From Schmidtea polychroa (Eukaryota): a stretch of DNA of 64,000 nt. Where the stretch lies: the NCBI GenBank assembly GCA_044892525.1, contig CM097888.1, positions 38,068,001 through 38,132,000 on the forward strand. Reading direction: 5' to 3'. The notes under the pieces are model-generated. The model made no database searches. It worked only from the letters and a program-made list of their open reading frames with translations, and had not been told where the DNA came from. The position numbers were made by a program, and so were the translations under genes. Positions 2,520 through 61,920 of the stretch are shown one piece after another (the first letter of the stretch is position 1; each line of letters starts with the position of its first letter).

Positions 2520-3066
2520 TTAGAGTGAAATCCAAAAAAGTTCATGGAAAACTGGTTTTATCTCAATATACCGGTATTGGGTTCCATATTTAGAATATAC
2601 ATTGATGGACCATTGTTTATCTATATATAGTTATATATTGTTTTATTAGAATGTGGATCAAAATTCAAAGTGAGAGATTAAAAAAAAGAAAATTCATCAT
2701 ACAATTTAACTAAACCAACTGTGTATAAACGTTATGTTGATGATATTTTTTTAATGTATGCGAATCTTCAGCAGTTAATGCCTTTCTTAGAATATGTGAA
2801 TGATTTGCACTAGAATGTTAAATTTAGGTGTCTATGATACCGTTTTTGGATATACTTAGTCAATGAAAAGGAAAAAAGACTATCAAACTGAAATATACAG
2901 AAAAGTGATTCATACTGGTGTTTTCATTTTAGGAAGTGTAGCAGTAAAAAAATGAGTATTACTGGGAACGAGTAACGCCCGAAGCGTTGTTAATTAGATC
3001 TTTAAATTCTATAATAAATACTCAAAGTGTCCAGTCTACAAGAGTTTTGAATGTATTTAAATAATT
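2520..3066 (+). mobile_element. Penelope-like element fragments (RT and GIY-YIG C-terminus)
   Basis: KPTVYKRYVDDIF (YVDD at 2733-2744), PFLDIL, EIYRK.IHTG, then EALLIRSLN..IN.Q....VLNVFK* matching the PLE end at 60653; many stops and deletions. Confidence 0.8.
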
Positions 3067-11309: not shown

Positions 11310-14300
11310 CATTTTTATAGTATTTATATATTTTTTGTGTGTGCGAAAAATGTTTGGCGCATTTGATTTTTTTTTCAATAAGGTACCTACAAAAAAGCTA
11401 TATTATAAACAAATACCGGTCACTATTTTCTATGGTCTTATGTTATTATCGTTTAAAAGTAAAGCGACGTCATTGTCAATTTTTTTTATGTTTGATAATT
11501 TATAATTGTCAATTTATTTTAAAATTCGGTTATAGTCTATAAACTATAATATTTTGATTATAATTATTTATAAGGCAAATTAAATACATTTATGACAAAA
11601 AATTAAACAACAAGAGTTTTGATTAAAACTTTTTTCTTTATTAATCAAAAAAAAATAAACAAAAATTAAAATATTAAATAATCCAAGTAATAAAATTAGA
11701 AAATTAATAAAACATAACAAAAAATATTGTATAAAATATTAAATTAAGGGATTCGCCTAGCTTTGATTTTAGCGAAATCTTTTCTCAACATATCTAGGTT
11801 TATAGATTTGGCAATGTCCGATTCAATGTAGATTATTGCCAAACCATTCAATTTTTCTTGCCCCATAGTTGATTGCTGGTAATTTTTAATCATTTTTAAT
11901 TTAGAAAAAGTTCTTTCACCTTTAGCAACAGAGACGGGTAAAGTTAATAGCACTCTTAATGCAATCAGTGCATTTGGAAAGAGTTCTTCAACGTTGTTAT
12001 TATAAATCCATTTCAAAATGTTTTCTGGGTTAGTATCATCTTCAATTTTTCGAGACAACAATTTCAGCTCAATTTGCAGTTCATTCTTTATAAGTTAATG
12101 CTGTTTCTAATAATTTACATTTATCTATGAGTTCATTGTTCTCCATTTCATCACATTTTTTAATATCATACAAAAGTTCAAAAGGTTTCATAACACTTGA
12201 AAACGATTCAAAACGTTGTTTCATTGAAGCAATTGCTATTGTAAATAATACGTCAAAAATTTCCTTTTGAATTTCATTTTAGGATTAATGGACTCGGGTA
12301 CTTCTGGCTCCTCTCCAAAAAAAGCGTTCTTTTTCGGATCCGATTTTCTACCTCAGGACTAAAATCATCAGTCAAATCCGCATCTATAGCGCATACTTTA
12401 GCTTCTGAAATATATTTAGCGAAAGAAACTTCGGAATTACGAGAAATCAAAAATTCAGTTTTTTTTTCAACACACTAGCTGCTGATCTCACATCCATGCT
12501 CTGTGATTGTAGTAGTTTGCTCGTACAATTTATTTCTGTTAGAACATCCTGCCAGATTATTAGACTACAAATAAATTCAAAACTGTCTAATTTTGATGCG
12601 ATTGATTCAGCTGTTATACGTGTAAGTGCATCTTTTTCCAATTGAACGATTTCTTTTAACGCTGAATAAATGCCTTTCAATCCGGTTTTCAAAGCACTAA
12701 CGGCATTAACATGGCTTTCCCATCTTGTATCACTTAAAGATTTCACTGTCAATTTACAACACATGGATATGAAAATATGCCAACGCTTTGGCGATCTTGA
12801 GAAAAAATTGTAAATTGTTTGGATGGTTGAAAAAAAATTAATAATTTCAATAGCTCCTTTTACTGCATCAACAACGACTAAATTTAAGGAGTGGCAGGCA
12901 CATGCAACGAAGAAAGCCCTTGGATTGATATTTGTAATATGAGACTGAACACCGTTTTTTCCCCACGCATATTGGCTCCATTATCGTAGCCTTGACCACG
13001 AATATTCATAATAGATAAGCCATTTTGTTTCAAAAAATTTAATATTTCTTCGGTCATCTTCGCTCCGGTTGCATCCAAAATGTTAATAAATTCCAAAAAA
13101 CTTTCTTTAACTTCCACACTAGCATTATTATCTTCGATTAATTTTGTGATGTGGACGTAACGCAGAACAATTGACATCTGTTCTTTATGGCTGGCATCAG
13201 GTGTACAGTCTACAATAACGGAAAAATACATTGCATTTCTTACCATTTCCAAAATATTATCCTTTGTAGTTTTAGCGATCAATAAAATAATTTCTTGCTG
13301 GATTTTTTTCCCCAAGTAATGAGTCTTATTTGAATTTTCTACTGCTCGTTTCACATGTTTCTCTAACACCGGATCAAATTTTGAAAACAACTCAACAATT
13401 TTAAAAAATTTACCATTATTTTCGGTGAATAGTCTGTCTGAAGATCCTCTAAATGCAATATTTTCTGAGGCCATCATTAAAATAATTGAGATTATTCGCT
13501 TGAGCACTTCATCCCAATGTTCTACTTCACTCAAGTATAATTTATTAGCTAGACAATCAACGGCTTGACCACAAGAAAGCCGCTTTTTAAGCTCAATCCA
13601 CTTTCCATAGCAGTGAAAATGTTCAGTACTTTGTTCATGTCTTTTTAAAATTATTGTTATGTGGCCCCAATCATTTGTGCCTCCTTTTGCTAAGGCAAAT
13701 TCATCATTACTAAATATTTTGAAACAAAAACAGAACACCTGATCTACTTTGGATGAATATACAAGCCAGGTTCTTTTAAATAATTCACCATTTGCTGTTT
13801 TTCGATGAAAATGTATTTTGTTAAATGATCGCCCCAAACTGTCTTTTGGGTACTGGTTAATGTTAGCTTGTATTGGACCTTTGGAAACTATATTTTGAAT
13901 TTGTAAATTTTGCAAATTTTCTGGCCAATCCGTTATATTACAAAAATCATTACAGCTAGATATATTCTCAGAACTTGTTTCTACCTCACTATTTAAACAT
14001 TCATCTTGATTAGCTGTACTAGTACTAGCATTTAAATCAACATTAACGTTAGTTTCATCAGTTTCAGATACAGACCTCTCACCAATTACAATATTTTCAT
14101 CGTACTCACGCTCATGTGTATCCATTTCTTCAACTATCTTATCAGAATTGTCTTCATTTTGCCTAACTTGCAGAAAGCTGTTCAGCGTTTTTTCATTTTT
14201 AAATTGCTCTTTCAGTCTGTTTTCTCTATTTTGTTTGTTCTGCCAACCAGACAATTTCCGTTTCCAATCCATGTTACTGCAAATAATTTTTAATATTTAA

Positions 14301-24204: not shown

Positions 24205-24340
24205 TAACACTTGATAAAGGAAAGACCGAAAATTTCGATGATTATTGGGAACGTGTAATTTGTGAGGCGTTATTGATAAAGTTATTGAATCCAAAAATTA
24301 ATGTGCAGAATGTAGTGAATACTTGTGTTTTAAATGTTTC
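24205..24340 (+). mobile_element. Penelope-like element 3' coding fragment (GIY-YIG end)
   Basis: FDDYWERVICEALLIKLLNPKINVQNVVNTCVLNV is near-identical to the end of ORF 60653-61018. Confidence 0.85.
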
Positions 24341-25460: not shown

Positions 25461-26990
25461 TCAAATTCTAGGAAATAGTTCAATCCGACAACCGTCACAT
25501 AATCTCAAAGTAAGAGCTTCGTCCACATCAAATGACTGATTTTCACATAGTTTAAAATCAAAATTATATAATATTCTTGAAATTAATGTTTTAGCTTCAA
25601 ATTCTGCAAAATATCTCCCAATGCATGATCTTTGACCCAATGAAAATGGTATATTTGTATATGGTTTGTCTTTTCCAATTATCATTCTTTCTGGATTAAA
25701 CTTTGCCTTATCCTCGCAATTGCTGTAATGAATTGGTATGAAATTAATAGCGATATCCGTACCAACCGGTAAAATATGACCGCCAACTTCTTCTAACCCT
25801 TTGGTTACTTCTCTGATAGTAGCATATCCTGGAGGATATAGTCTTAATGCTTCTCTCCAACACATTTCTATATATGTTAATTCTTTCAAGTTACAATACT
25901 CAATCTTAGAATGTAGATGGAAGAAATTATCAACTTCTTCCTGAGCTTTCTTTTTTACATCTAAATTATTAGCTAGAAGATAAAAAAGAAAAGCTATGCT
26001 GTTTGATGTTGTTTCCTGTCCGGCGATGAAGAGAGTCACAAAATCGTCTACCATCACATCTTCAGACAAATTAGACTTTTCGGAGTTTCTAATAATGAGA
26101 TCAATAATGTCATTATTTACTTCATCATTGTGATTAAAGGTTTTGAGTCTTTCCTGTAAAATTTCCTTTCCAAAATTACGAAGAAAGCAAACTGCTTGCC
26201 GCCTGCGTTTGACTTCTGTCCAGTTCCATGGTTTATACTTAAAAAATGGATCATTGTAGCTTTCCGAAATCGCTCTTGACGCAGTATAGACAGATTCATG
26301 AAAGACATTATCATCATCTTCTAAACATCGGGATTTTATAGAAAAAACTGATTCAAAAAGTATATCAGTTGTTACTTTATTCACGTAATCCAAAAGAGAG
26401 AAAACTTCACTGTTTTTCATTAATTCATTAAACTTTATAACCAATCTTATTGCATGCCTATCAAAAATTGGAAATAACTTTTTCAAATAGCTTTTATAAA
26501 AGGCTGGATTCAAAGCAGCTCGATGTATTTTCCACATTTTATGATCGCATTCCGTTAAAAGCCCCTTGCCCATGAAAGGTTCTCCGAGCAATATTTGTAA
26601 TGGCTTGTATAATTTATTAGACTTCGGATAATTGGAATTTAAACAAATTGTTTTTGCTAGTGAGGAAGAAGTGACCATGACTATAATTTTATGAAATATG
26701 CATAGTTTAAAGATTGGCCCATACGTTTTATCCAATTCTATCCATAATAAATGCCGATTTCGTTTGGCTAGCATCAATTGTTCTGCGTTTCCAATGAAAA
26801 AGTTTCTAAAAGGTGGATTTGGCAAAGATTTGTATTGCCGTCGAACATAAAGGATGTATAATGAATATAAACTTACAATGAAGATGATAATGATAGTTGG
26901 AGTAACAAAACATGAACCAATGGATACACATGAAATTAGCAAAACAGACACCATAAGAAAAAAGAATGTAAAAGTTATTAAAAATTTCAT
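25461..26990 (-). CDS. Cytochrome P450, CYP46A1-like (cholesterol 24-hydroxylase-like), single exon, 509 aa
   Basis: N-terminal membrane anchor, I-helix FIAGQETT, K-helix EALR, meander FNPER, heme loop FSLGQRSCIG. GKGLLT and DDFVTLFIAGQETT are CYP46-like. Confidence 0.93.
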   Translation of the reverse strand: MKFLITFTFFFLMVSVLLISCVSIGSCFVTPTIIIIFIVSLYSLYILYVRRQYKSLPNPPFRNFFIGNAEQLMLAKRNRHLLWIELDKTYGPIFKLCIFHKIIVMVTSSSLAKTICLNSNYPKSNKLYKPLQILLGEPFMGKGLLTECDHKMWKIHRAALNPAFYKSYLKKLFPIFDRHAIRLVIKFNELMKNSEVFSLLDYVNKVTTDILFESVFSIKSRCLEDDDNVFHESVYTASRAISESYNDPFFKYKPWNWTEVKRRRQAVCFLRNFGKEILQERLKTFNHNDEVNNDIIDLIIRNSEKSNLSEDVMVDDFVTLFIAGQETTSNSIAFLFYLLANNLDVKKKAQEEVDNFFHLHSKIEYCNLKELTYIEMCWREALRLYPPGYATIREVTKGLEEVGGHILPVGTDIAINFIPIHYSNCEDKAKFNPERMIIGKDKPYTNIPFSLGQRSCIGRYFAEFEAKTLISRILYNFDFKLCENQSFDVDEALTLRLCDGCRIELFPRI

Positions 26991-28051
26991 ATATATTCTG
27001 AATAATTAGTAAACACTTCACTTTACGTATGAAAGTCCAACTAAATACTTATCAAATTATACGATATTTTAGATAAAAGTTTATAGTTCTTATATTATAG
27101 ACAAAGGTGTGTTTAGGGTATCGTAAACCCGGGAGTAAATATAAACCCGTTGCCCGTATCCTTATTGAAAAATAAATAAAAGTAATATAAATTTAAAAAA
27201 ATCTAAAAATATTTATTCATCCCTTTTATCCTTGGAAGTAGATTGCTGGCTAATTTCTAGATCAAACTTTATGCTTTCCAATTATTTATAAAATGTGAAT
27301 ATTAGTTCCAAGGTCTCGAAACCGAGTGTCCTTCGTTTATGTGAAAATAATAAATAAATAATTTACTACTATGATATTATCGCTAACTGCTCATAGTCTC
27401 AAATAATAAAAATAATAAAAATGATTAATAATAATTAATTAATAAAAACAAATAATTAATAATAAAAATTAACACATAAAAATTACACACAAATACCACT
27501 ACAAAATTATTAAATTTCGAAACATGTTTAGGTAATCTAAAAATATTTCATAGCCATCATCAATTCCAAATAAAATTTGTGGAAAATAACCATAGTCGGT
27601 CACAAGCTCTTCTAATTTAATTGAAATATTTTATAAATGAATTTTATCAAATCACATTGAAAGCTCTAAAATTTGTAGTTAATTTAGAGTCTAAATTATT
27701 CACTGTCATTAAATCATTTCCTTCCTTGATTCATTTGGGAATCTTTTATAGTTTCGTATTTATCAACACTGTTTTAACACGTTTATGAATTTATCCAGGA
27801 TTTTAAAACTGTTAACAAATCTGTGTTTAAATTCTTTTATCTAAATACATAATTTTCTATGTAATAATGTTTGGCTGTAACGCTATTTAAAGGTTTAAAA
27901 TGAATATTAAATAATTATTAGTTATTAATTATTTTTCTATATAAAATTTTCCACATGTTTTTATAAAAATTTTGATTATAGAAATAGCTGTATTTTGATT
28001 TATACACTGCTAGGGATAGAAAAAATAATTAGATAAAGCTGAAATTTAAAT

Positions 28052-37550: not shown

Positions 37551-40500
37551 CTTATAATAATTATATTCGAATGAAAATTGACTACACTTACTCGCAGCCT
37601 CATATGCTGATGCATTTTATAAATTGTGTAGAATAACAGCAAGGCCGTAAATATGCATCTTAAATAAATTAAAAAAATTATTATATCAAGATTTCTAATG
37701 AATTCCAAACTTTTTCTTTTCAATTCATAGAAAATAAAAATTTTTATAAAAATAAAAACCAACTAATAACAGAAAATGATTCCTAACCAGGTCAGTAGAA
37801 AATATTAAAACAAAAATGATTAATTATTCATTAAGATTTTGAACCGATCAACATGCAATACATAATTTTTATACATTTCTATACAACATTTCTATATATA
37901 ATATAGCGACAATTTTCAATAAAATAGGTATTTATGATGTAGTTGCAATTGGATATCTGATTGCCCTGATACCCATGCAATATTATGTATTATTATTTAC
38001 ACGTTGGGTGCTGCAAAACTACAAAACATTTGATCATCTATATAACTTGTAAGACATTGAGAAGCAAGATTTGTTACACGTGGCCTCGGAAAATATTATA
38101 TGCAGGGCCCCTTCCCAAAAAGGAAGAAATTATACATGAACATAACTTTATCAATCTATTTAATGAAATATTTATTTCTTCAAAATATTCAATAATATAC
38201 ATACATAAACATAATATTTTTTATTCTTATTTCCTACAAACTTTTTTTACTGCTAATTCCTTGATATTATCATCAAAATTTATCTGTTTTGTTACCTCCT
38301 ACTCTATTAACAACATAGTTATCCTCTCTTTTTGCATAGTTGCTCTTAGATAATTTTTAATTAACTTTAATTTGGAAAAACTGCCTTGCATTTTGTGTCA
38401 AAAACTTGCCCTAGCTACTAATAATTGTTAGAAATATGAAAGCGCGGGCCTATGGGTCTGAATGTCTACTGTACACGGTATGCTTCTCATGGCACTCAAC
38501 GTGTTAATGTTGAATATATCAAAATTACTTATGTTATTGTTTATTACTTTATAGATCAACAAAAAATTGTAACACGTGCTGTAGACAGAGTGGCCTTATC
38601 TACTGAGCTAACTGTGCTTAACACAGGAGTACCAGCAGAATGTGGGAGGGTGTCCATCAATGTAATATATAAATCATTTTTGTATAAATTAATATGTATA
38701 AAAAAATTAAAATTTTCAATTTTTTAAACTTTTTCATTAAAATATTTGAAGACACATATACTTATAAAAACTATGGAAATTATAATCTGTATTTATAAAG
38801 TCAGCAATCTTTTATAATAATAACAAACAACATTGAACTTACGCAAATATTGATATAAATATATACGGTAAATTTGAGTAGACTTTCTGAGTGAATATTA
38901 ACTAAAAATAAAAAGATTTAATTTTCGTTTGAAATATTCACAATTATAACTTCAATGTGAAATTTGTCTAATGTTAATACATTAAATCCGCTTATTGTAA
39001 ATAAGAGTTGATAAGAAACTTTTCCTTCAAATAGAGATTTCGGGAAAATATTCTCGAGAAAAGTACAATTTATTTCTGAAAGCAAAATCTCTCGATTTCC
39101 GGAGGCGTTGAACAACCTTGACAATAAATATTGACTAAATATAGTTACTTAAATAAACAAGGTAAAGACTTTATTAATAAAAATTGCCATTCGTACATCT
39201 TTTTCACTTATATTTCGACAGTATCACTATCATCATCAGGTTACCTACATTCACTAGGGATGAATAACTATACAATATTGATAATTTGTTTATAAATTAT
39301 CAATATTGTATAATTATTCATCCCTAGTGAATGTAGGTATCCTGATGATGATAGTGTTGCTATCGAAATATATAGTGAAAAAGATGTACGAATGGCAATT
39401 TAAATATAGTTAATTTAGTGATTATTAATATATTGTATAAGTGTTTATATTAATTTGTTAACCAAATAAGTAAAAATTTATGGCTCCCAAAATAATACTT
39501 AAATATTTACTTTTCTAGTAATGCAAGATAAATTTTGAATTAAATTCCTGAAATATTGATTTAATACACTATTTCTATATCAATATTCTATATTCCACAA
39601 GCCTTATAATACAACACAAGAAACAAGCTGGAGGTTCAGGTATACAACTACGAACGAAACGCAAACTTTACCGTGATTTGTGAATTGAACAATGACATTA
39701 TTTTCCGCAGAAATAGGAATATTCAAGGTAGCTGGAATATATAATTGAGACTTTCCTACTTTTTAAAAGTCCAATGGTCCTGATTCTCATAAAATTTGAC
39801 AGTTCCTTTGAGCCGGGATTGCGTGGCATGGAGTAGAAAAAAATTAAACATACACAAACAGGCACATGTATATTTAAGTAGAGAAGCTCTGACCAATCAA
39901 AACGACCTTTCTCACAATTATTCATTTCTATCAATGATTATGACTGGTACTGCTAATAGACCTAACTGTTGGGTTATAATTGAATAATAATACTAGTCGG
40001 TGGTTCTGATTCCTTGTGTTCTATAAAATAAAACACAACACTCCTAACGTATATTTGTATTTACAGTTATTTATTACCAACTGCACGCTCGAATTGTTAC
40101 AACAAGAAATGATATACGTTATGACTACCCGACGAGTCCCGCTGCGGCTATGGATTCCTTGCACTTGAACAATAATCACCTTCTATAATCTGATTCTGAT
40201 CCGATCCTAATTGATCTATAACTTCACTAAATCTTCCATTTTCCTTACTTTCAATGAATTTAATATGTCCTCAAATCACACTCTCAAGTTCTTTGTCCCT
40301 ACTTGAGGCAAAATGCCGGTGGTTTCTAATTTTGTAAATAATAATTGTATATTATATTAATAATTTAAATATAAGTATAATTATAATATAATTATATAAT
40401 TTAAATTAATAGAATGATTGTAGAATGATGTTTTCTTGCTCAAGATATTGTTGGCATAAAATAATCCTCGTTTTTGAATATTGTGAATAAGAATAAATAT

Positions 40501-52230: not shown

Positions 52231-55200
52231 TTGTTTTGATTTTATATATTTAATTTTCCATTTGTTATGGAAATTGGATAAATGATTTTCGCAATTTGTT
52301 AAATAATTTTGATATGCTATTAACAATAACAACAGAGTAGAATAGAGTGATAAATGAAAAAATATAATTTAGAGAAAAAATCAACTATGCTGAGAATTTT
52401 TGATGTTTTACAGAGACGTTTGTAAGATTCCAACAGCACAATTAATTTCACTGAAATATTGTACCTTCCATAAAACCTCTTATTCGTTGCTTCTTTCTGG
52501 TATTCCAAATAGATAATATGGCAATGGCAATGTATGGTTGTAAAGCCATTTTATGAATACTAATTAATTATTAGTTATTGATTATTTTTTATATAAAAAT
52601 TTTGAATATTAAATAGATTTTTGAAGACAATTACGTGTTTTGATTTATACATTGCGAGGATATAAAAATAACTAATTATCTCAACGTTGACTGCCACGTG
52701 AGTTAAATACAACTAGCATTTACAATGGAAATAGGTGCCATGTGAGTTACATATTATTCACATATAAGCATAGCAAGGTAGTGTGGCCTCACAAAAACTT
52801 CATCAATTTCTGAGGCTGCAGTTAATATGTTAAACATGAAATGGGCAGTCATTTTGATGCGTTATAATATATTAATCTAAAAATTAATCTAATTAATAAT
52901 ATATCAAGTAAACTATAATAAAACATGGAGAATGAAAGAAAATAGAATGTAGTATTTAAAATTAAATTTACTGATGTATATATTCTAGAAGTACTCGTTT
53001 AGTTGTTATACTGGATTATGGCAATGTTAATTAAAATATGAAATTCGAGTAAATTAACAGTTATCTGATCGGAGGCTTATTTAAGATTATTAGGAGGTTC
53101 ATCCTGTAAAACATTAAAATCAGTTTTTGTTTCCATAAATTTTATTTCAGTAAATATCAGTATCAAATTATATCTTTCTTTCGATCCTTTTTCCATCTTT
53201 ATTTCTTAAGATGTATCGTCTGTCATGCACTTTCTCTATCATTTTGTACGGACCTTCATACCTGTCCTGGCCTTTGTGTCGTGTTTCTACTTTTACTAAT
53301 ACTTCTACATTGAATTTTCTCCTTGTTTGTTCTTCTAGTTCTTCCTTTATCGGTATTTCTTTGGACCCGTACCATTTTTCCCTGCTAATCTTTTTTCCAA
53401 AAACTATCTCTGCCGGGCCTTTCCCTGTCGTTTTTTGTTTGGTTGCATTTAAAGTGAATTCGACTTCTGGTAATATCTCTGCCCAATCATTCTTCTTTCT
53501 ATCCTGTAAAGTAGCATTTATCAAATCCCGTATTGTCCTGAATTGTCTTTCTATCTGACCGTTTGTTTGGTGATGGTATGGACTCGAAAAACATAATTTA
53601 ATATCTAGCATCTTTGTGAATTCTCTCATCATTCCTGATTCAAACGCCTTTCCGCAATCAACTCTTATCTCCTTTGGGCATCCAAATCTTAAAATCCACT
53701 TTTCTAAAATCGTTTTCTTTATTGTTTCTTCGTCTTGTTTTGTTATCGCTGTCAAGACTTGATACTTACTATACTGATCTATTATGATCTATTATACTTC
53801 TTACGTCCTTTTGTTTCTGTCAACGGTCCACATAAATCCACGAATATAATTTCGAACATTTCCTTCGAATCTTGTTTTTTTACTGGTTCTTTCGTTGTTA
53901 TTGTTAAAGCCTTGGTTTTTTGACAAATCTCACAACTTCGAACAATTTCCTGAATCTGACTCCACAGGTGTTTTCCAACATATCTATCTTTAATATAATC
54001 GGCTATCTTCTCGACTCCAGCATGACACAATAGTCTATGTATTTCCTTTATTGTTTCTTGTAACTCATTTTCAGGTATCATCGTTTTCTTTCGTACTTCT
54101 TCTACAATTCCATGTTGGATGTTGCTTCTTCCTTCTTCTCTGATCGAGTCTAGTAATCTGGTTTTTATCTTTCCTTTCTTAGCTTCTTCGTGGGCCATTT
54201 GACATTGAACACACGTGTCACATTTAGTTCTCGACACCATGTCTGCATTTTGGTGATTAATACCCTTTCTGTATTCTACTCTTATATCTAAACTGCTCAA
54301 ATAATTGATCCATGTTTGGAATTGTGAAGTAATCGGCTTCTTGGTTGTCATCATAAACGTGATTGCCTTGTGGTCTGTCCTGAGCGTGAATCTTCTTCCG
54401 TAGAGATAGTGCTTAAAATGAATGCAAAAATAATATACCGCCAATAGTTCCTTTCTTGTAATACAATATCCTTTCTCGTGGCTCGTCATCGAGTGTGATC
54501 CATACGCAATTACTCTTTCCTTTCCATCTTTATCTCTTTGTGAAAGTACTGCTCCAATGGTATCGAAACTAGCGTCGGTATCTAAAATGAACTCCTTTTT
54601 CAGATCCGGAAAACATAAGATTTGCACCGTCGTGAGTGCTAATTTCAATCCCTCAAACACGCTATTCGTTCCTTCACTCCATTCTAATTTTTTGTTACTT
54701 GGTCCGCTACATAATTGTTCTAACATCCTTGCCTTCTTTGCATAATCACTGATGAATCTTCTATAATAATTGCAAATACCTAAAAAGCTTCGGAGTTTCT
54801 TTACGCAATTAGGCTTCCCAAAGTTCTGTATGGCCTGAATTTTAGATGGATCTGTCTGTACTCCTTCCTTGCTGATTATATGTCCTAAGAATCTGATTTC
54901 TTCCTTTATTATTTGGCATTTTTCTGGATTAATCCTTAGGCCTGCTTCCTCAATCGCCTTTAACACTTCTCCGAGTATTGTATAGTGTTTCTCTTTACTG
55001 CTTGAATAAATCAAGATGTCGTCCAAATACACCATTGCTACCTTTATTTTGCCTAATACTTTTGTCATCATTTCTTGGAACGTACCTGGTGCTGCTGCAA
55101 TTCCAAACGGCATTCTGCTGAAACAATATTGTCCGTTCTTTGTTGAGAAAGCTGTTTTCTCCTGTGATTCTTCTTCTAGTTCCACTTGGTAATATGCATT

Positions 55201-58200
55201 ACCTAGATCGATTGAACTGAAAAAGACGGATCCTCCTAACAAATCCAACATCTCGTCTATGTTTGGCATTGGAAATGCCTGCCTATTATAAGTTTCTCAT
55301 CAGTTACTCATTGAAAAAAATACAAAGTTTTTGAAAGATAGATAATTTTTGTTCAACACATTTAATAAGTTCTTCATTAAGACCTAATTTAATGTGTAAT
55401 GGTGAAAAATTCGTAGCTGGTGATTTAACTAATGATATATTAATCAAATTTCGGAAATCTTTTTTTATTTTTTTAAGCATCTTTTAAAAGACCTGAATTT
55501 AAGAAAGTACAAGAAACAGTCATCCTTATGGTTTTTCCGTTGTCATTAAATGTGAGTGTTCCAAATCTAAATGAGGATAGTTTTCCTATTGTTCAACAAC
55601 TTATGTTTTCCACTGAAATTCCTCAAGGAATATAAGGAGGTCATAATGAAAAATAATATTGAGTTTATTTTGTTAACATCTAAATAGATACTTTAGAATG
55701 TTGCAGACATAGAAACTAATTTTTTTGAAAACTCATAATGAACCATAAATTAAAAAAACTTTAAAAAGAAATAAGGACTTTGTTTTAACAGATACAAAGA
55801 AAAGGTGATATTAATCCAGTAATAAATATAATATAAAACATGTTTTATTCATTTTTTTCAAAAATTAATTGTTTTTATAAGATTGAAATCCCACTGGCAT
55901 TATTTGATTTAGCTTAAATAAACTGGGGAATTTTATGATTGTAAAGAGTACCCCTGAAACTGGTATTCATCTACAATTGAAATCCTGAAGCATTTTTTGT
56001 TTGAATTTTGGTTAAATTATTCAGCAATATTTAATAACTGATTGCAGCCAATTAATATTATAACATCTTACCGAAATTCATAGAGGTTAATGCAATTTTA
56101 TAAGCTGAAATTTTTCCTCCGACAATTAAAATTGTAGAATTATTTTTCAAAGACAATTGGCCACCAATACTAATAAATTCTCTATTATATTTATTCCATG
56201 TACGTTTTAAAACATCGAATTGATAAATTATTGGTGAAATTTTGGTCTGGGTTTTGTTATTCGAGTCTTCAGTCACAATTTTTCCACCGACAACAAAAAT
56301 CTTATAATTAATGAAAACCATTGCGTGAAGGTATAGTTGCGGTCCGGAATTATCAATAACTGTCCTATTCAAATATACATAAACAAATATAAATATTCGG
56401 AACTAAAATTAATTATAAAATTATTCAAGAAGTGAGAATAACAAAGATTACTTCACCTTACAACCAAGATTTTAGCTTTCTTTTGTATTCTGTCCGTAAT
56501 TTATGCACATTTGGTGAATTTGGTTTAACAAAATCAAATTCAGCCATAGTTAATTAAGGTCCCATAAAACGAGAGAAAAAATGTTGGTAAAAAAATTCAT
56601 TTTATCAAATTATTAACCATAATTTTTTATAGTGTAAATCCGGGGTTAGCAACCTTCGTGCATTGCGAGCCACATTAAATTTTAAAAAGAATGGTGTAGG
56701 CTGCATTATTGAAAAAACAATAAACATATATTTGAATAAATAGTTAAACATACATGGCAATGATTTAATTATAAGATAACGTAAATCAAACATTCTTCTC
56801 ACAATATATTTCGACAGTTTTCATCAGGTGGGATATAATAACTATGTAAATTAAGGATTTTAAACAAATTTATTAATTATATATAAAAAAAATTTTATTT
56901 AATAAAAACATTTAATTGTTTTTAAAAAACTAGGGGCTCCGCCCCTGTTCGCTTCGCTTCAACAACCCCGTTAGAACGCTAGAAATAATAGCGGTAAAAT
57001 GATAATCATATCACGTTTGAAGAAGGGAACGAAGCGGAGGCGTTACGTAAGCATAGTATAACTATGTTATTAGAGTTTTTTAAGTTAAACATGATTGATG
57101 AATTTAGTCGAACACTTCCATATGATAAAATTCTAACGGGATAGGTGAAAAATAAAAAAAAAATTTTTAAATAAATAATAAAAAATTTAAAAAAAAGAAA
57201 AATTANNNNNNNNNNNNNNNNNNNNNNNNNNNNNNNNNNNNNNNNNNNNNNNNNNNNNNNNNNNNNNNNNNNNNNNNNNNNNNNNNNNNNNNNNNNNNNN
57301 NNNNNNNNNNNNNNNNNNNNNNNNNNNNNNNNNGAGGGAACCCTTAGCTTTTTTATATATAGAGATTATAATTAAATTAATATATTATTTTTTTTAATTT
57401 TAGCATTCAAGATTTAATTTAATAATTTAAAAATTTTATTAATTATTTAATTTACTACAAACCATCAATACATACAATATAAAAAAACTTATTTAAAAAC
57501 ACTCAAAACACAAGTATTTACTGCATTCTGCACATTAATTGTCGGATTCAATGACTTTATCAACAACGCCTCACAAATCACACGTTTCCAATAATTATCG
57601 AAATTTTTTAATAAAATTTTAAAATCAGACATATAATTAATAAATTTGTTTAAAATCCTTAATTTACATAGTTATTATATCCCACCTGATGATGACAGGA
57701 AAACTGTCGAAATATATCGTGTAAAGAATGTTTGATTGGCGTTATCTTATAAACATATTTGATACATTTTTTTTGCAAAAATTCACAAATTGTCATTACA
57801 TCTCTTCAGAAAATAATAGCGGTTATTATAGAACTAATGCTCGCCCCAACAGTAAGAAAACTCATAATTGAGATTATGAACACCACATGTGTATAAATAA
57901 CGGAAATGGGAATAAGGCTGAAAAAGTACGCTAAAATCTCGGTTATAAGACGTAGTCACCTTTGTTATTCTTAATCATTTTGACTGACATTTGTTGGCTC
58001 CAAGTTGCATGGCGGCATCACGAAGTACGTGTATAAACATATTATTGACATGGTAAGTATGATCAATTTTTATGGGCCACATACAAATTTCAACAACACA
58101 CTTATTTTTTATCAAATATAAATTTCCATCTTCAAAAATTTAATTTCTTAAAGTTTTTGTCTTTCGAGATAAAGTTTTCGACTAACAGGTCCATTGTGAT

Positions 58201-61200
58201 ATTCACAGATCAAATATTTAAGGGCAAAAATTTGCACTTGATAAAAATATGTGTGCATTATGAAAATTTATATACTTTTGACATCAAATCTCTTGTTTTG
58301 CTAATTCCATGTAACAAAATAGCAGAAATGTTTGAATATTTTTTTGAAAAATTTCCTTTCTTTAAATACATTTTTGAAAGTTTCAATTTTGTAAATATGA
58401 AGATTATTGAAAATGTCAAAATAAATATACCAAGTTAAGATTCGCATTTCTCAATTCAACAAAAACAAACTCAATATTATGTGTTGTAGAGATTTTAAAA
58501 ATGATTCTAACTGATAAAGGGTACGAAAAGTCAATTACGAAGTAAATTACTAAGAAGCTCTTCGGTTTTAGCAAAGCATAACTAATGTGAATAGGAATGA
58601 GAGGCCAATATTAGATCTAAAAATTTTTACTAAAGCCCAAAAACAATTGTTAATTACGAATTGCAGAATTTCAATGGCTTTCAAGCGATCAAAAACCGAT
58701 ATTAATAAAAATTCTCGTTCGTGGACCGATAATCTGGTAAGATTTGAAAAAGCCATTCAACTACGAAAAAGCATCCCATGTTTGGAAGTATCGTTGGAGA
58801 ATTACTGCAAAATACCTCTGAAAAGTGCTATCATTGGCAGATATCATTATCTTGCAAAAATCGAGGAGTGTCGCAAAAGAAAATTTAAAATGATCGCGGA
58901 AGAATTGGAGTTTTTGTGGATCAGAAAATTAAATTTCCATTTCATAAAATTGAAGTCTATAGCGAGAAGAGTGGACAATTTAATATCTGAACACAACACC
59001 TTATTAAAGCGTCCCAGTCAGAAAGATGAAAAAGTAACTTTTGCTGGTATATTTGACATCACCTGTACAAATTGAGAGTGGTTTAGTGGGGAAGATAAAC
59101 TCAGAAACTAACTATGCTGAATCCTACAAGCCTATTGAAAAAAAGAATATTGTCTTTCAGCACCATTCAACAACTGAAGGCTCTAGCGTTCAAAGAAATA
59201 ATAAATAAAAGCTTTAGAATAAATAAGGGTGAGAAATTTTCCCCTTCGGCCTTGATTGGTCAGTTGGATTGAATGAAATAAAATTTGATTTTTTTAGCAT
59301 TAGTACCAGGAGGGTCTGTATTATGCAAGCAATTATCTGCTGACGGTATCAGCTTGCCCACGCCATCCCATGTAGAAATTCTGAAAGCAATGAAGAAACA
59401 GGCTGAAAAGATGAAAATAAATATGAAGAGTACTTTGAATTGATATATCTTTCACTATTTCATCGACAATGGAGAATTCCCGTACATTAAATTTCGTGGA
59501 CTATGAAATTTGAGCAATCCACGGTGGAATTCACGTGGAATCTGTGCTATCCTAGCTTTTATATTATTGCCTGAAATGAGAAATCGATTGCATCAGATAT
59601 GTTCAATTATTTGTGGAATCTGGTTGGACATTTGGTTTTCAGATCACAATATTCAAGAAAATGCCTATACTAAGTTATCAGAAAGTCTTCAAAATTATGA
59701 AAATACTAAAAAGGGTTTTGATAACCACTGGAGTAAAGAACCATCGATAATTAACAGCCAGCGCAGCAATATTTGTGCTGAGAGGGACATACATGTTATG
59801 TAATTGCAAATCTCCTGAATCTCAATTTACGCTTTATATTCAGTAACAAGGATTTATGACATAACATGTTGCTTCACTTTCAAAACCATTATTACACAAA
59901 GAAGAAATCTTATATTTTTTGGTGAGTGATGTTTTTGAAAGGAAAACCAAAAGTAAATATATATTTTCTACTTTTTTTCTCGTAGTGTAGGACCATGACC
60001 GTCACATTTTCAGAAAAAAAGTCAAAAGGTTACCACCCTAATGTCAACTACTTTGTATTAGTCACACTTGTCTTTAATTAGAAAAAAATTAGTGACGTCG
60101 GAAAATACGGACATTGAGTAAATTTTAGTTTCAATTTGATATACACGATATTATATGTTATAACACTTAATTCTTCAATCATAATATATTAATTATCATA
60201 ACCACTGTATAATTGAATTATAATAATTTCGAAATCGACAATTTTAACAGAAATTGTAAAATTTCAAAATTCAACATTCTCATACATAATTTCAAATACA
60301 TATTTTAAATAATTTACTTTTTTAAGTACTTAAATAAACACGGTAAAGACTTTATTAATAAAAATCGCCATTCATACATCTTTTTCACTATATATGTTGA
60401 TAGCATCACTATTATCCTCAGGTTACCTGTATTCACTAGGGATGAATAACTATACAATATTGATAATTTATGAACAAATTATTAAATCTATAAATTTTTA
60501 AATTATAAATAACAATTTTAAATAATAATTTTCAAAAATAATTATTAACAAACAATTATTTTACACTTAAAATTCTTTAAAAATATTATTTTAATTATTT
60601 TTTTTAATTATTTAACATAACTATTATTCAATATACATCAACATACAAAAACTTAATTAAAAACATTCAACACAGACGTATTCACTGCATTCTGCACATT
60701 GATTTTAGGATTGAAAGTTCTTATCAATAATGCTTCACATTTCACACGCTCAAAACAATTATCAAAATTTTTTGATAAGATTTTAAAATCCGACATTTCT
60801 AATTCACTCATACAGACTTTATTATGATCCTTAAAATTGGACACTCTCTTCGGTCGACAGTGTTCTTGAACTCGAGTAGAGATGACAGGAAGTCTCTCCA
60901 ATGTATGTGGCATTACACCCATTACATGTGAATTGATAAACGAGATCCGAACACAATCCAACGGGCGTTTGAGATTTACTAACAAACATACTACGTACTT
61001 TGCACGATTTCGAAACAATTCTATAATTCGATTTACCCAGCTGTTTACCTATCATTTTTTTGAAATCTTTATATCATTCAGAATACAGCAATACCATCGT
61101 ATATTTCGGCTCAACTTGTTTGATAGTATCAATACTCATATTCACTACATCATTCGACATATCAGTCAATTTACATTCATTCATACTACGATCCTTAGCA

Positions 61201-61920
61201 TTATTCATACATTTATCAACAGTCTCTTTCAACGTTAACAATAAAAACCATTTTGAATAGCCATTTTTCACCAGTAATTCAACTAATTTATCTACAATTT
61301 TTACTGAATTTTTAAAAGTGGAAGATAAGCAGCATGATTGATAAACAAATCCTTTCACCATATTTCTTTTATATTCAAATTCATAAAAACTCTCTGGGGT
61401 AGTATAGAGGTTAGTATCTGTTGGTTTTCTTTGAATTTCTGTCTCATATTGTTCATCTTTACGTTTAATTTTAAAATAATTTCGATTCTTAAAATTCGAG
61501 TTCGTTAGTTTTCCTCCACTCACAAAATATTAGTAAAACCCAATCTAAGGTTTAAATGTGTAAAAATATATTTTTTCTATTATAGAAAAATAGTATTACC
61601 GAAAAAAAATTAAATAATTAAGTTAAGATGACAATCAATTATTTTATTTAGATTGTGCAATTAATTAACATATTTAATATCATACCAGATCAACCAAGAC
61701 ATATAATTAATTGTTATATTATATATAATGTCTAACCATTCATTGGTATGCAAATTGAGAGCATAGAGTGCATTGGAAACACTAATGCTGCTAAAATTGC
61801 TCATCATTAGTCCCCCATAAACCCAAATAATTGACCCACTGCGAGACGTGGAATGATATAGTAATCCATCAAAATTATTAAGTAAACTTTTAAAAATTGG
61901 TTCCATCCATTTTCCAGAAC
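37044..61920 (-). CDS. ATRN: Attractin-like type I membrane protein (Kelch repeats, PSI, laminin-type EGF, TM, cytoplasmic tail), multi-exon; 5' CUB/EGF exons not located
   Basis: Exons seen: Kelch about 61920-61670 (LLYHS..SGSIIWVYGG) and 56364-56072 (LYLHAMV...FVVGG); PSI 48845-48520 (ECVWC...GEC...CGW...GVGK); 44203-44043 (CIEG..GP...WSF..CSACNCNGHASC); about 43865-43665 (CSKCLHNTTGDLCQKCKEGFQGSPINGQKCSPCKC); 41734-41529; 39116-38951; TM exon ending 37592 (CIFTALLLFYTIYK); last exon 37550-37044 (MERPY, CIEP, AVVTFLFQSP). Order and motifs match ATRN/ATRNL1. Some internal exons unresolved. Confidence 0.9.
38000..38503. mobile_element. piggyBac-type non-autonomous element (about 500 bp)
   Basis: TIRs CACGTTGGGTGC vs CACGTTGAGTGC (revcomp); TTAA on the right (38504-38507), TTTA on the left. 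Confidence 0.55.
39205..39277 (-). ncRNA. Hammerhead ribozyme motif M1
   Basis: AC-CUGAUGA-U-GAUAG[UGAUA]CUGUC-GAAA-UAUA-A-GUG; one U is missing for the minimal type I fold, but a full type III fold is possible with upstream sequence. Confidence 0.75.
39340..39377 (+). ncRNA. Hammerhead ribozyme motif P2
   Basis: CUGAUGA 39342-39348, extra U, stem II GAUAG/CUAUC, GAAA 39365-39368, UAUA loop, UA, GUG; stem I weakened by a U-U mismatch. Confidence 0.75.
45635..45995 (+). repeat. 361-bp repeat, copy 1 (inverted partner at 52649-53009)
   Basis: Exact reverse complement of 52649-53009 except for one mismatch found. Confidence 0.93.
46190..48350 (+). mobile_element. Degenerate Gypsy-like LTR retrotransposon (gag zinc knuckle, RT, RNase H, integrase), interrupted by an insertion at about 47165-47608
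   Basis: CFKCQSTEHL knuckle; RPVLDFRDLNE; LD.KK.YLQLH.DESLW; HINLAEL..V...EVMTNS.SV.SW; integrase HHF, CLQCRAIDP...W.RIAIDTTHY...YLS. Confidence 0.85.
47523..47608. repeat. 13-bp GC-rich tandem array (TGTCCGCGACGAA x5 plus a degenerate unit), probably a DNA transposon terminus
   Basis: Five exact units at 47523-47587, then TTGTCCTGCGACGTATTGCCC, where the retrotransposon RNase H reading resumes. Confidence 0.85.
48520..48845 (-). CDS. ATRN: Attractin-like PSI-domain exon
   Basis: Phase-0 splice GK|CIEG to the exon starting at 44203 reproduces the conserved GKGKCIEG segment. Confidence 0.85.
49255..49345 (+). repeat. Repeat family A copy with hammerhead-like relic (CUGAAGA...AAAUAUAUCG)
   Basis: Aligns to 8450-8525 and 11100-11185; CTGAAGA at 49265-49271. 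Confidence 0.75.
49400..51790 (-). mobile_element. pogo-family (POGK-like) DNA transposon, degenerate, split by a nested hAT
   Basis: N-terminal KRSFYDTSFKLRAIE, HFAVVL...AD.TKL...IFKRK, LVW..FSAH, VIPGG.TS....LDV..NK; acidic C-terminus ...SDTEFEGF* resumes left of the insertion. Boundaries approximate. Confidence 0.8.
49726..51015 (-). mobile_element. Internally deleted hAT Charlie/Buster-type element (1290 bp)
   Basis: TIR CAGTGTTTCTCAAA at both ends; 8-bp TSD ATCTAGAG/ATCTAGAC (NTCTAGAN target typical of Charlie/Buster); C-terminal PFSTAYL...FS...KNK...PRIE.LV..KQAHCSH. Confidence 0.92.
52649..53009 (-). repeat. 361-bp repeat, copy 2
   Basis: See 45635-45995. Confidence 0.93.
53171..55284 (-). 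mobile_element. Ty3/Gypsy pol fragment, copy 2 (RT, RNase H, integrase), no LTRs
   Basis: A 495-aa open frame with YLDD, DAS, TDHK and HHCC zinc finger (H..LCH...C..C), then a frameshift at a 10-bp tandem duplication (53776-53795), then the D-D-E core (VDLCGP, RVDCGKAF, NGQIERQF) and GPY motif. Confidence 0.96.
56072..56364 (-). CDS. ATRN: Attractin-like Kelch exon
   Basis: YLHAMVFINYKIFVVGG...YQFDVLKRTW and NNSTILIVGG align with attractin Kelch repeats 5-6. Confidence 0.8.
56800..56830 (-). ncRNA. Hammerhead motif M2, inactivated by an 8-nt deletion of the 5' arm of stem II
   Basis: CAC-CUGAUGA-AAACUGUC-GAAA-UAUA-UU-GUG; same as P1 minus UGACAGGA, with H17 U instead of C. Confidence 0.75.
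56930..57365 (-). mobile_element. Non-autonomous Helitron inserted in the PLE tail (spans a gap)
   Basis: 5' A|TCTCTATATATAAAA at 57365; 3' GC hairpin AGGGGC-GGA-GCCCCT ending CTAG|T at 56930. A/T insertion site, no TSD. Confidence 0.65.
57683..57721 (+). ncRNA. Intact minimal type I hammerhead ribozyme P1
   Basis: Stem I CAC/GUG; CUGAUGA 57686-57692; extra U; stem II GACAG/CUGUC with GAAAA loop; GAAA 57709-57712; palindromic UAUA loop; AUC cleavage triplet with predicted cut after C57718. Confidence 0.85.
58100..60041 (+). mobile_element. Internally deleted hATm-like DNA transposon
   Basis: LCKQLSADGISLPTPS, SNPRWNSRGICAILAFILLP, RSNICAERDI motifs; right end ...ACCACCCTAA (revcomp TTAGGGTGGT) at 60032-60041. 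Left TIR not found; subfamily from memory of motifs. Confidence 0.6.
60325..61523 (-). mobile_element. Penelope-like element, 5'-truncated (RT thumb, GIY-YIG endonuclease, 3' tail with hammerhead and poly(A) signal)
   Basis: RKPTDTNLY; LVYQFTCNGCNATYIGETS.HL.TRVQEH (frameshifted); CEALLIRTFNPKINVQ...LNVFN* (stop at 60653); hammerhead about 230 nt downstream; AATAAA at 60356-60351. Confidence 0.93.
60386..60457 (-). ncRNA. Hammerhead motif M3, degenerate (GAAA replaced by AACA)
   Basis: AC-CUGAGGA-U-AAUAG[UGAUG]CUAUC-AACA-UAUA-UA-GUG. Confidence 0.7.

Follow-up and report, generated by a model that had tools for sequence, protein, structure and literature searches.

What kind of event could have left, inside an intron, a 253-bp near-palindrome that carries a candidate hammerhead ribozyme on each strand and is bordered by an exact short direct repeat? 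The region in question is 39136-39412 of a 64-kb window (the whole stretch of DNA that was analysed), and a preliminary description had offered two readings of it: a non-autonomous, retrozyme-like unit mobilised by the Penelope-like element (PLE) at 60325-61523, or an extremely 5′-truncated inverted PLE insertion. Our analysis favours the latter. We give a probability of roughly 80% to a single PLE insertion event that copied no more than the final 110-140 nt of the element RNA, twice and in opposite directions.

The region consists of the following parts, in which the 60-kb copy is the PLE named above.

39136-39147, no strand: left copy of the target-site duplication, an exact repeat of 39401-39412, the last 2 nt of which may belong to the element
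39148-39180, minus strand: 33-nt "tail", the 3′-terminal extension of the minus-strand arm, placed by alignment with the terminus of the 60-kb copy
39181-39287, minus strand: left arm, the 107 nt of PLE 3′ UTR that immediately precede the tail, with a putative hammerhead motif at 39200-39247
39288-39293, plus strand: spacer of 6 nt, oriented as in the plus strand, which is the loop of the element's own small hairpin
39294-39401, plus strand: right arm, the matching 3′ UTR segment, ending at the tail boundary, with a putative hammerhead motif at 39334-39382
39401-39412, no strand: right copy of the target-site duplication, an exact repeat of 39136-39147

The two inverted arms and the spacer between them form a near-palindrome of 221 nt. 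Arm aligned with arm at 92.8% identity over 222 nt (E 2e-90) in a BLAST search of the region against the window, which together with a global alignment confirmed the proposed arrangement of two head-to-head PLE tails with arms of about 107 bp and a 6-nt spacer. The insert proper (39148-39400, 253 bp) has no coding sequence and is composed solely of PLE 3′ end, as had been claimed, but the two tails are not equal: a copy of 140 nt and a copy of about 120 nt stand head to head, the minus-strand arm continuing into the 33-nt extension and the plus-strand arm terminating exactly where such an extension would start, so that the tail is found on one side only. At the junction of the arms lies a small hairpin that belongs to the element itself and is made up of the spacer and the 7 innermost nt on either side. 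In the 60-kb copy this hairpin has a 7-nt stem, a 6-nt loop and a 7-nt stem (60463-60482), and the spacer matches that loop at five of six positions in the plus orientation, compared with two of six in the opposite one. The 12-nt exact direct repeat abuts both ends of the element, and only 0.4% of positions picked at random in this window of 72% AT show a repeat of at least 12 nt at any offset, in agreement with the earlier view that the insert has a target-site duplication of its own; the length of the target duplication is best given as 9-12 nt, since the element may contribute a single base of it on the right and two bases on the left.

The arms differ by five substitutions and one 1-nt indel in the global alignment. 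All six differences had been assigned to the ribozyme region, which is correct for the five that fall within the 41-nt hammerhead motif but not for the sixth (39268/39313), about 25 nt upstream; by our own binomial estimate, the clustering of five of the six within the motif has a probability of about 0.03. When the 60-kb copy was used as outgroup, three derived changes were assigned to each arm, and two derived changes in helix II of the left arm have retained pairing via wobble pairs. BLAST detected one copy of 39136-39412 in the 64 kb, and metagenomes scanned for the 28-nt terminus of the arm yielded no further copy of this exact family; the direct evidence on the exact unit thus comes from one copy in the 64-kb window, and an empty site was not encountered.

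Both arms contain a hammerhead core with the published features of the PLE type, one per strand, including a G10.1-C11.1 pair, a helix II of 6 bp, a short helix I, and a helix III of 1 bp with a palindromic 4-nt loop. All six pairs of helix II can be formed in the arms. The core of the plus-strand motif is intact, and the minus-strand motif has a 1-nt deletion at loop 3/position 16.1, in the helix III/cleavage-site region. Matches to the catalytic core pattern in the window number three (both arms and 57686 on the plus strand), against 0.03 expected. Rfam searches over the arms returned no hammerhead either at the gathering score or at E values up to 10; however, relatives from metagenomes with good helices are also missed, so that the negative result says little and the models appear not to cover this minimal class. 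The same database gave sub-threshold matches to models of miRNA precursors, far under their gathering scores, and since the palindromes of relatives yield similar sub-threshold matches, these reflect any long hairpin.

The pairs expected in a hammerhead are formed in 86% of cells among 29 aligned relatives, compared with 63% after shuffling and 28-43% when partners were slid, and the covariation score is 0.59 against 0.16, with 8 of the 11 pairs changing at both of their positions; the search pattern itself dictated the two outermost pairs of helix II in this set and left the remaining pairs free. Covariation in relatives supports the putative hammerhead fold, and with it the earlier claim of one candidate ribozyme per strand. 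Covariance model R1, of which both arms are seeds, scored 53.9 bits for the left arm and 61.8 bits for the right arm. RNA folding gave no stable ribozyme fold for single arms, as expected for motifs that are said to act as dimers: published minimal PLE hammerheads cleave poorly and only as dimers (PMC4209133). The window arms share the motif traits of these minimal ribozymes but differ from them in a weak helix I (2-3 of 4 pairs) and in the nucleotide lost at helix III in the minus copy (PMC4209133).

The family from which the insert derives can be recognised through the 60-kb copy, whose 3′ UTR shares 89% identity with the arms.

60327-61523, minus strand: 5′-truncated, broken PLE remnant, with a coding remnant at 60659-61478, a motif at 60381-60429 and a tail at 60327-60361

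An exhaustive search of representative proteins with a 149-aa open piece of this copy identified 50 relatives, the longer of which have an RVT_1 domain before the segment that matched and a GIY-YIG domain after it. When proteins were searched with this 149-aa piece by a word index there was no match, and Pfam found no GIY-YIG in the window's own endonuclease pieces; the domain evidence therefore comes from the relatives. On sequence grounds, the source family of the insert is a Penelope-like element that encodes a reverse transcriptase followed by a GIY-YIG endonuclease (an EN+ PLE). When these relatives were aligned to the window by tblastn, 60659-61478 was covered by only their last 250-290 residues, in two frames, with one frameshift and one in-frame stop. 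Since the 60-kb copy is both 5′-truncated and broken, it cannot be the mobiliser. The core of its hammerhead motif is substituted, and a 10-nt repeat flanking the copy was rejected as a duplication because such a repeat is not above chance in this composition.

A second composite with a similar design was found in the same window.

56724-57762, minus strand: second composite, with an inverted 122-nt arm at 57631-57752 (plus strand) that abuts the 5′ end of the minus copy

The minus copy of this composite is a 5′-truncated PLE running from 57632 to 56736, with the C-terminus of the endonuclease and a 3′ UTR that includes a run of N (left unread). A covariance model built from the alignment of relatives located a fifth hammerhead motif at 56795-56835 (minus strand), which has an 8-nt deletion; a 33-nt tail (56768-56736) is present on one side only, and a duplication of 10-12 nt flanks the whole unit. 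Two more diverged remnants of the PLE endonuclease region were seen at 2694-3058 (plus strand) and 24225-24338 (plus strand), which brings the PLE-derived insertions within the 64-kb window to at least five. All motifs in host-sense orientation (39200-39247, 56795-56835 and 60381-60429, minus strand) are damaged, by the 1-nt deletion, the 8-nt deletion and core substitutions, respectively, and the cores of the host-antisense motifs (39334-39382 and 57678-57726, plus strand) are intact. This contrast (3 of 3 sense versus 0 of 2 antisense motifs damaged, p about 0.1 by our own estimate) may reflect selection against sense ribozymes in introns, or chance.

We also examined how common the design is among related loci, retrieving at least 120 JGI metagenome contigs by means of a pattern of 21 nt from the ribozyme of the window element itself. 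These loci come from few sample series, and the frequencies given below are therefore not genome-wide estimates. Contigs with the pattern have a GC content of 38.5% and resemble animal host DNA carried in host-associated metagenomes. An inverted duplicate over the hammerhead was present in 64 of 122 related loci listed, mostly as spacerless palindromes of 200-900 nt, and no PLE coding sequence was found in the 120 metagenome loci listed. Among the matches listed, 90 unique palindromes were left after repeat samplings of one host locus had been dropped, and 24 of these 90 have an exact duplication of 10-16 nt that is flush with the palindrome at one end and lies 26-43 nt from it at the other. 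The most frequent duplication length in these 24 is 12 nt (13 of 24) and the median extension is about 33 nt, the values of the window element (12 nt and 33 nt). Only one palindrome among the matches listed is flush at both ends, and a displaced control gave 0 of 87.

One related family is represented by ten loci in unrelated flanks. At every locus, the conserved tail follows exactly one arm and the distance from the core to the outer end is constant across loci, whereas the distance from the core to the centre ranges from 37 to 143 nt between loci and is equal for both arms within a locus. (An ungapped measure of the "loop" in this family was dropped, being unreliable where the arms have indels.) Outer ends that are fixed, combined with inner junctions that are variable yet symmetric, imply that the palindrome was rebuilt at each insertion and that no palindromic master was copied. 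Along a longer copy, coverage has the steep profile of plain 5′ truncation. As a separate observation, the two arms of some palindromes in the L025-L098 family differ widely in their distance to other copies (e.g., 0.05 vs 0.21), which is not predicted by equal-age decay of two identical arms and hints that two templates or two events may have been involved in these relatives.

The insert is located in a 2.4-kb intron of a host gene, with its tail-bearing arm in the orientation of that gene, upstream of the following exon.

38951-39118, minus strand: host exon 39116-38951 with the acceptor AG at 39118-39117, defined by a spliced homologue (P0072)

P0072 (238 aa) was found with the 190-aa ORF downstream. 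Its residues 1-57 align with 41698-41528 (96%) and residues 58-112 with 39115-38951 (51 of 55 identical), and further exons are covered at 38901-38842, 37678-37592 and 37553-37299; the alignment also implies a very short intron of 49 nt at 38902-38950 (minus strand) directly after exon 39116-38951. Pfam, PDB and a codon-usage score did not confirm this exon. Considering this spliced alignment of P0072, both the exon and the acceptor are real, and the acceptor lies close to the insert on the minus strand, as had been noted: the AG is 29 nt from the end of the element and 63 nt from the end of the stem, and with the target duplicated, the 29 nt that precede the acceptor are still the original ones. 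The gene had been named attractin. Matches to an Attractin/LZTR1 propeller (E 4.6e-4) and to PSI (E 0.003) in upstream minus-strand exons are in favour of this name, but both are weak and below the Pfam cut-offs, so that an attractin-like host gene is no more than plausible. Elsewhere in the window, the ORF at 25464-27005 (minus strand), intact and 514 codons long in a single exon, encodes a cytochrome P450 (Pfam p450, E 3.5e-72), and two long open frames, 53171-55296 and 12887-14296 (both minus strand), resemble by eye an LTR-retrotransposon polymerase/integrase and another transposon-derived protein, respectively.

Folding of the RNA of the palindrome region gave a single long stem (-161 kcal/mol, z = -25 against shuffles), in line with the earlier expectation that a long hairpin would form in the host pre-mRNA, with a predicted stem of about 107 bp. 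The only host-sense ribozyme copy in the insert is the one with the 1-nt deletion. It is possible that a predicted 107-bp hairpin 63 nt from an acceptor in use influences splicing or small-RNA production, and effects through ADAR, Dicer or splicing, which had also been suggested, are speculation.

Taken together, the 33-nt tail on one side only, the presence of just one flanking duplication, the meeting of the arms at a native palindrome and the many relatives of the same design support the second of the two original readings, an extremely 5′-truncated inverted PLE insertion. How such a product might arise is suggested by in vitro work on another PLE, in which the protein nicked both strands and extended them from two neighbouring start sites, with the tail corresponding to the sequence that separates these sites (PMC11167929). 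By extension, the PLE protein would have nicked both strands of the target, and each 3′ end would have primed reverse transcription, one from the distal start site, with the tail included, and the other from the proximal, tail-less one. Two short cDNAs, or one self-priming cDNA, would then have joined at the small palindrome, and each strand would have been completed on the other (inferred from PMC11167929). The expected outcome is an inert, non-coding near-palindrome of 253 bp in a host intron. Self-priming accounts for arms that are symmetric at variable junctions no less well than two independent cDNAs do; however, the orientation of the loop observed here is opposite to that predicted by a simple fold-back of the tail-bearing cDNA. 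The start site did not differ between top and bottom strands in vitro (PMC11167929), and the one-tail rule (24 to 1 among the palindromes listed) is therefore unexplained by that work.

The reading that the palindrome is a non-autonomous mobile unit, retrozyme-like or SINE-like, which is transcribed and copied whole by PLE proteins in trans, would account for an insert with its own target duplication and a proper PLE 3′ end on both strands, for related palindromes, similar in size, that recur at separate loci whose flanks are unrelated, and for metagenome loci devoid of PLE coding sequence, and a 2026 preprint derives animal retrozymes from PLE pLTRs (10.64898/2026.07.22.740005). However, a copied master would give one inner junction, whereas in the related family the outer ends recur and the inner junctions do not. 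A tail on one side and a flush end on the other agree with formation de novo, the coverage of the longer copy is that of plain truncation, and the window holds a single copy. Retrozymes are direct tandem repeats with a single ribozyme polarity, but the palindromes here are inverted; with the two hammerheads on opposite strands, the same-polarity motifs in direct repeats by which retrozymes are recognised are absent, and no single transcript would have the two sense ribozymes that retrozymes need. The neighbouring PLE is a dead remnant, and the proposal of a retrozyme-like unit mobilised by it is not supported, the probability of a mobile unit of any such kind being very small. (A nearest-neighbour ranking of arms was tried as a test of unit mobilisation and dropped, being non-discriminating under a star-like history.)

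It is also very unlikely, in our view, that two separate insertions took place, a second 5′-truncated PLE landing inverted against an older one whose tail was recognised by the endonuclease. The Penelope endonuclease does need tail sequence to recognise a Penelope fragment (PMC11167929), the arms differ at six positions, and arm divergence is unequal within the loci of some relatives. Nevertheless, one duplication flanks the whole unit and is directly abutted by the tail-less arm, the symmetric arms meet at a native palindrome, three derived changes per arm fit an equal age, and the layout recurs in 24 of the 25 relatives with a clear duplication among the matches listed. Chimeric reads are known to produce palindromes and inverted PLE structures to trouble assemblies (PMC8557442), but the chance that a fold-back chimera was assembled here is close to negligible in view of the six arm differences, the extension on one arm, the exact flanking duplication, the position in mid-contig far from N runs, and the matching design of independent metagenome contigs. 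Takeover of the hairpin by the host, either as a source of small RNAs or as a modulator of the adjacent acceptor, would draw on the predicted stem, its distance from the confirmed acceptor and the miRNA-precursor matches; this is highly improbable, because those matches are far under the gathering scores and equally found in relatives' palindromes, and because the arms are drifting apart.

A single truncated, inverted PLE insertion has consequences for annotation, in which such units should be labelled accordingly and not as miRNA-like hairpins, MITEs or new elements. The window case and about two dozen relatives provide clean examples at the junction level, in which the duplication is 12 nt, a single tail measures about 33 nt and the arms meet symmetrically at a small palindrome. 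These examples bear on the recently proposed mechanism of PLE insertion with two strands and two start sites, and they pose a question beyond the in vitro data, namely why exactly one end carries the tail. A broader conjecture, which we consider unlikely, is that PLE insertion may routinely lay down near-perfect hairpins of the 3′ end with one tail each, and that those in introns could feed the small-RNA machinery of the host against the family; a related idea is that hosts purge gene-sense ribozymes.

In LINE-1 twin-priming, both nicked strands prime reverse transcription and the cDNAs join by microhomology, giving an inverted 5′-truncated insert with a target duplication. That system differs in its enzyme family, and LINE-1 inversions lack the palindromic symmetry and the single-sided tail of the PLE products. 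Animal non-LTR retrozymes (10.64898/2026.07.22.740005; Cervera and de la Pena 2020, via PMC8557442) resemble the window element in being short, non-coding, PLE-derived and hammerhead-bearing, but theirs are direct tandem repeats of one polarity that release a circularising monomer, whereas the window element is inverted with one putative ribozyme per strand. The closest counterparts are inverted insertions of EN+ PLEs (PMC3846280, PMC8557442, PMC11167929), which have in common with the window element the duplication, the one-sided tail of 30-40 nt, the head-to-head 5′-truncated copies, the junction palindrome and the hammerhead motif in the terminal repeat. Inverted 5′-truncated PLE copies with a tail of 30-40 bp at one end have been described (PMC8557442), as have head-to-head inverted pLTRs with junction palindromes, a 31-bp tail on one of them and duplications of 8-10 bp (PMC3846280). 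The duplication is 12 nt in the window element compared with 8-10 nt in rotifer PLEs, and the copies in the insert are only 107-140 nt long, so that neither coding sequence nor a direct pLTR survives. The layout as such, with a duplication, a one-sided tail of 30-40 nt, head-to-head 5′-truncated copies and a small palindrome where they join, has been reported for PLEs before, and the insert, though well preserved, is an ordinary by-product of PLE insertion, not a new kind of mobile mini-element.
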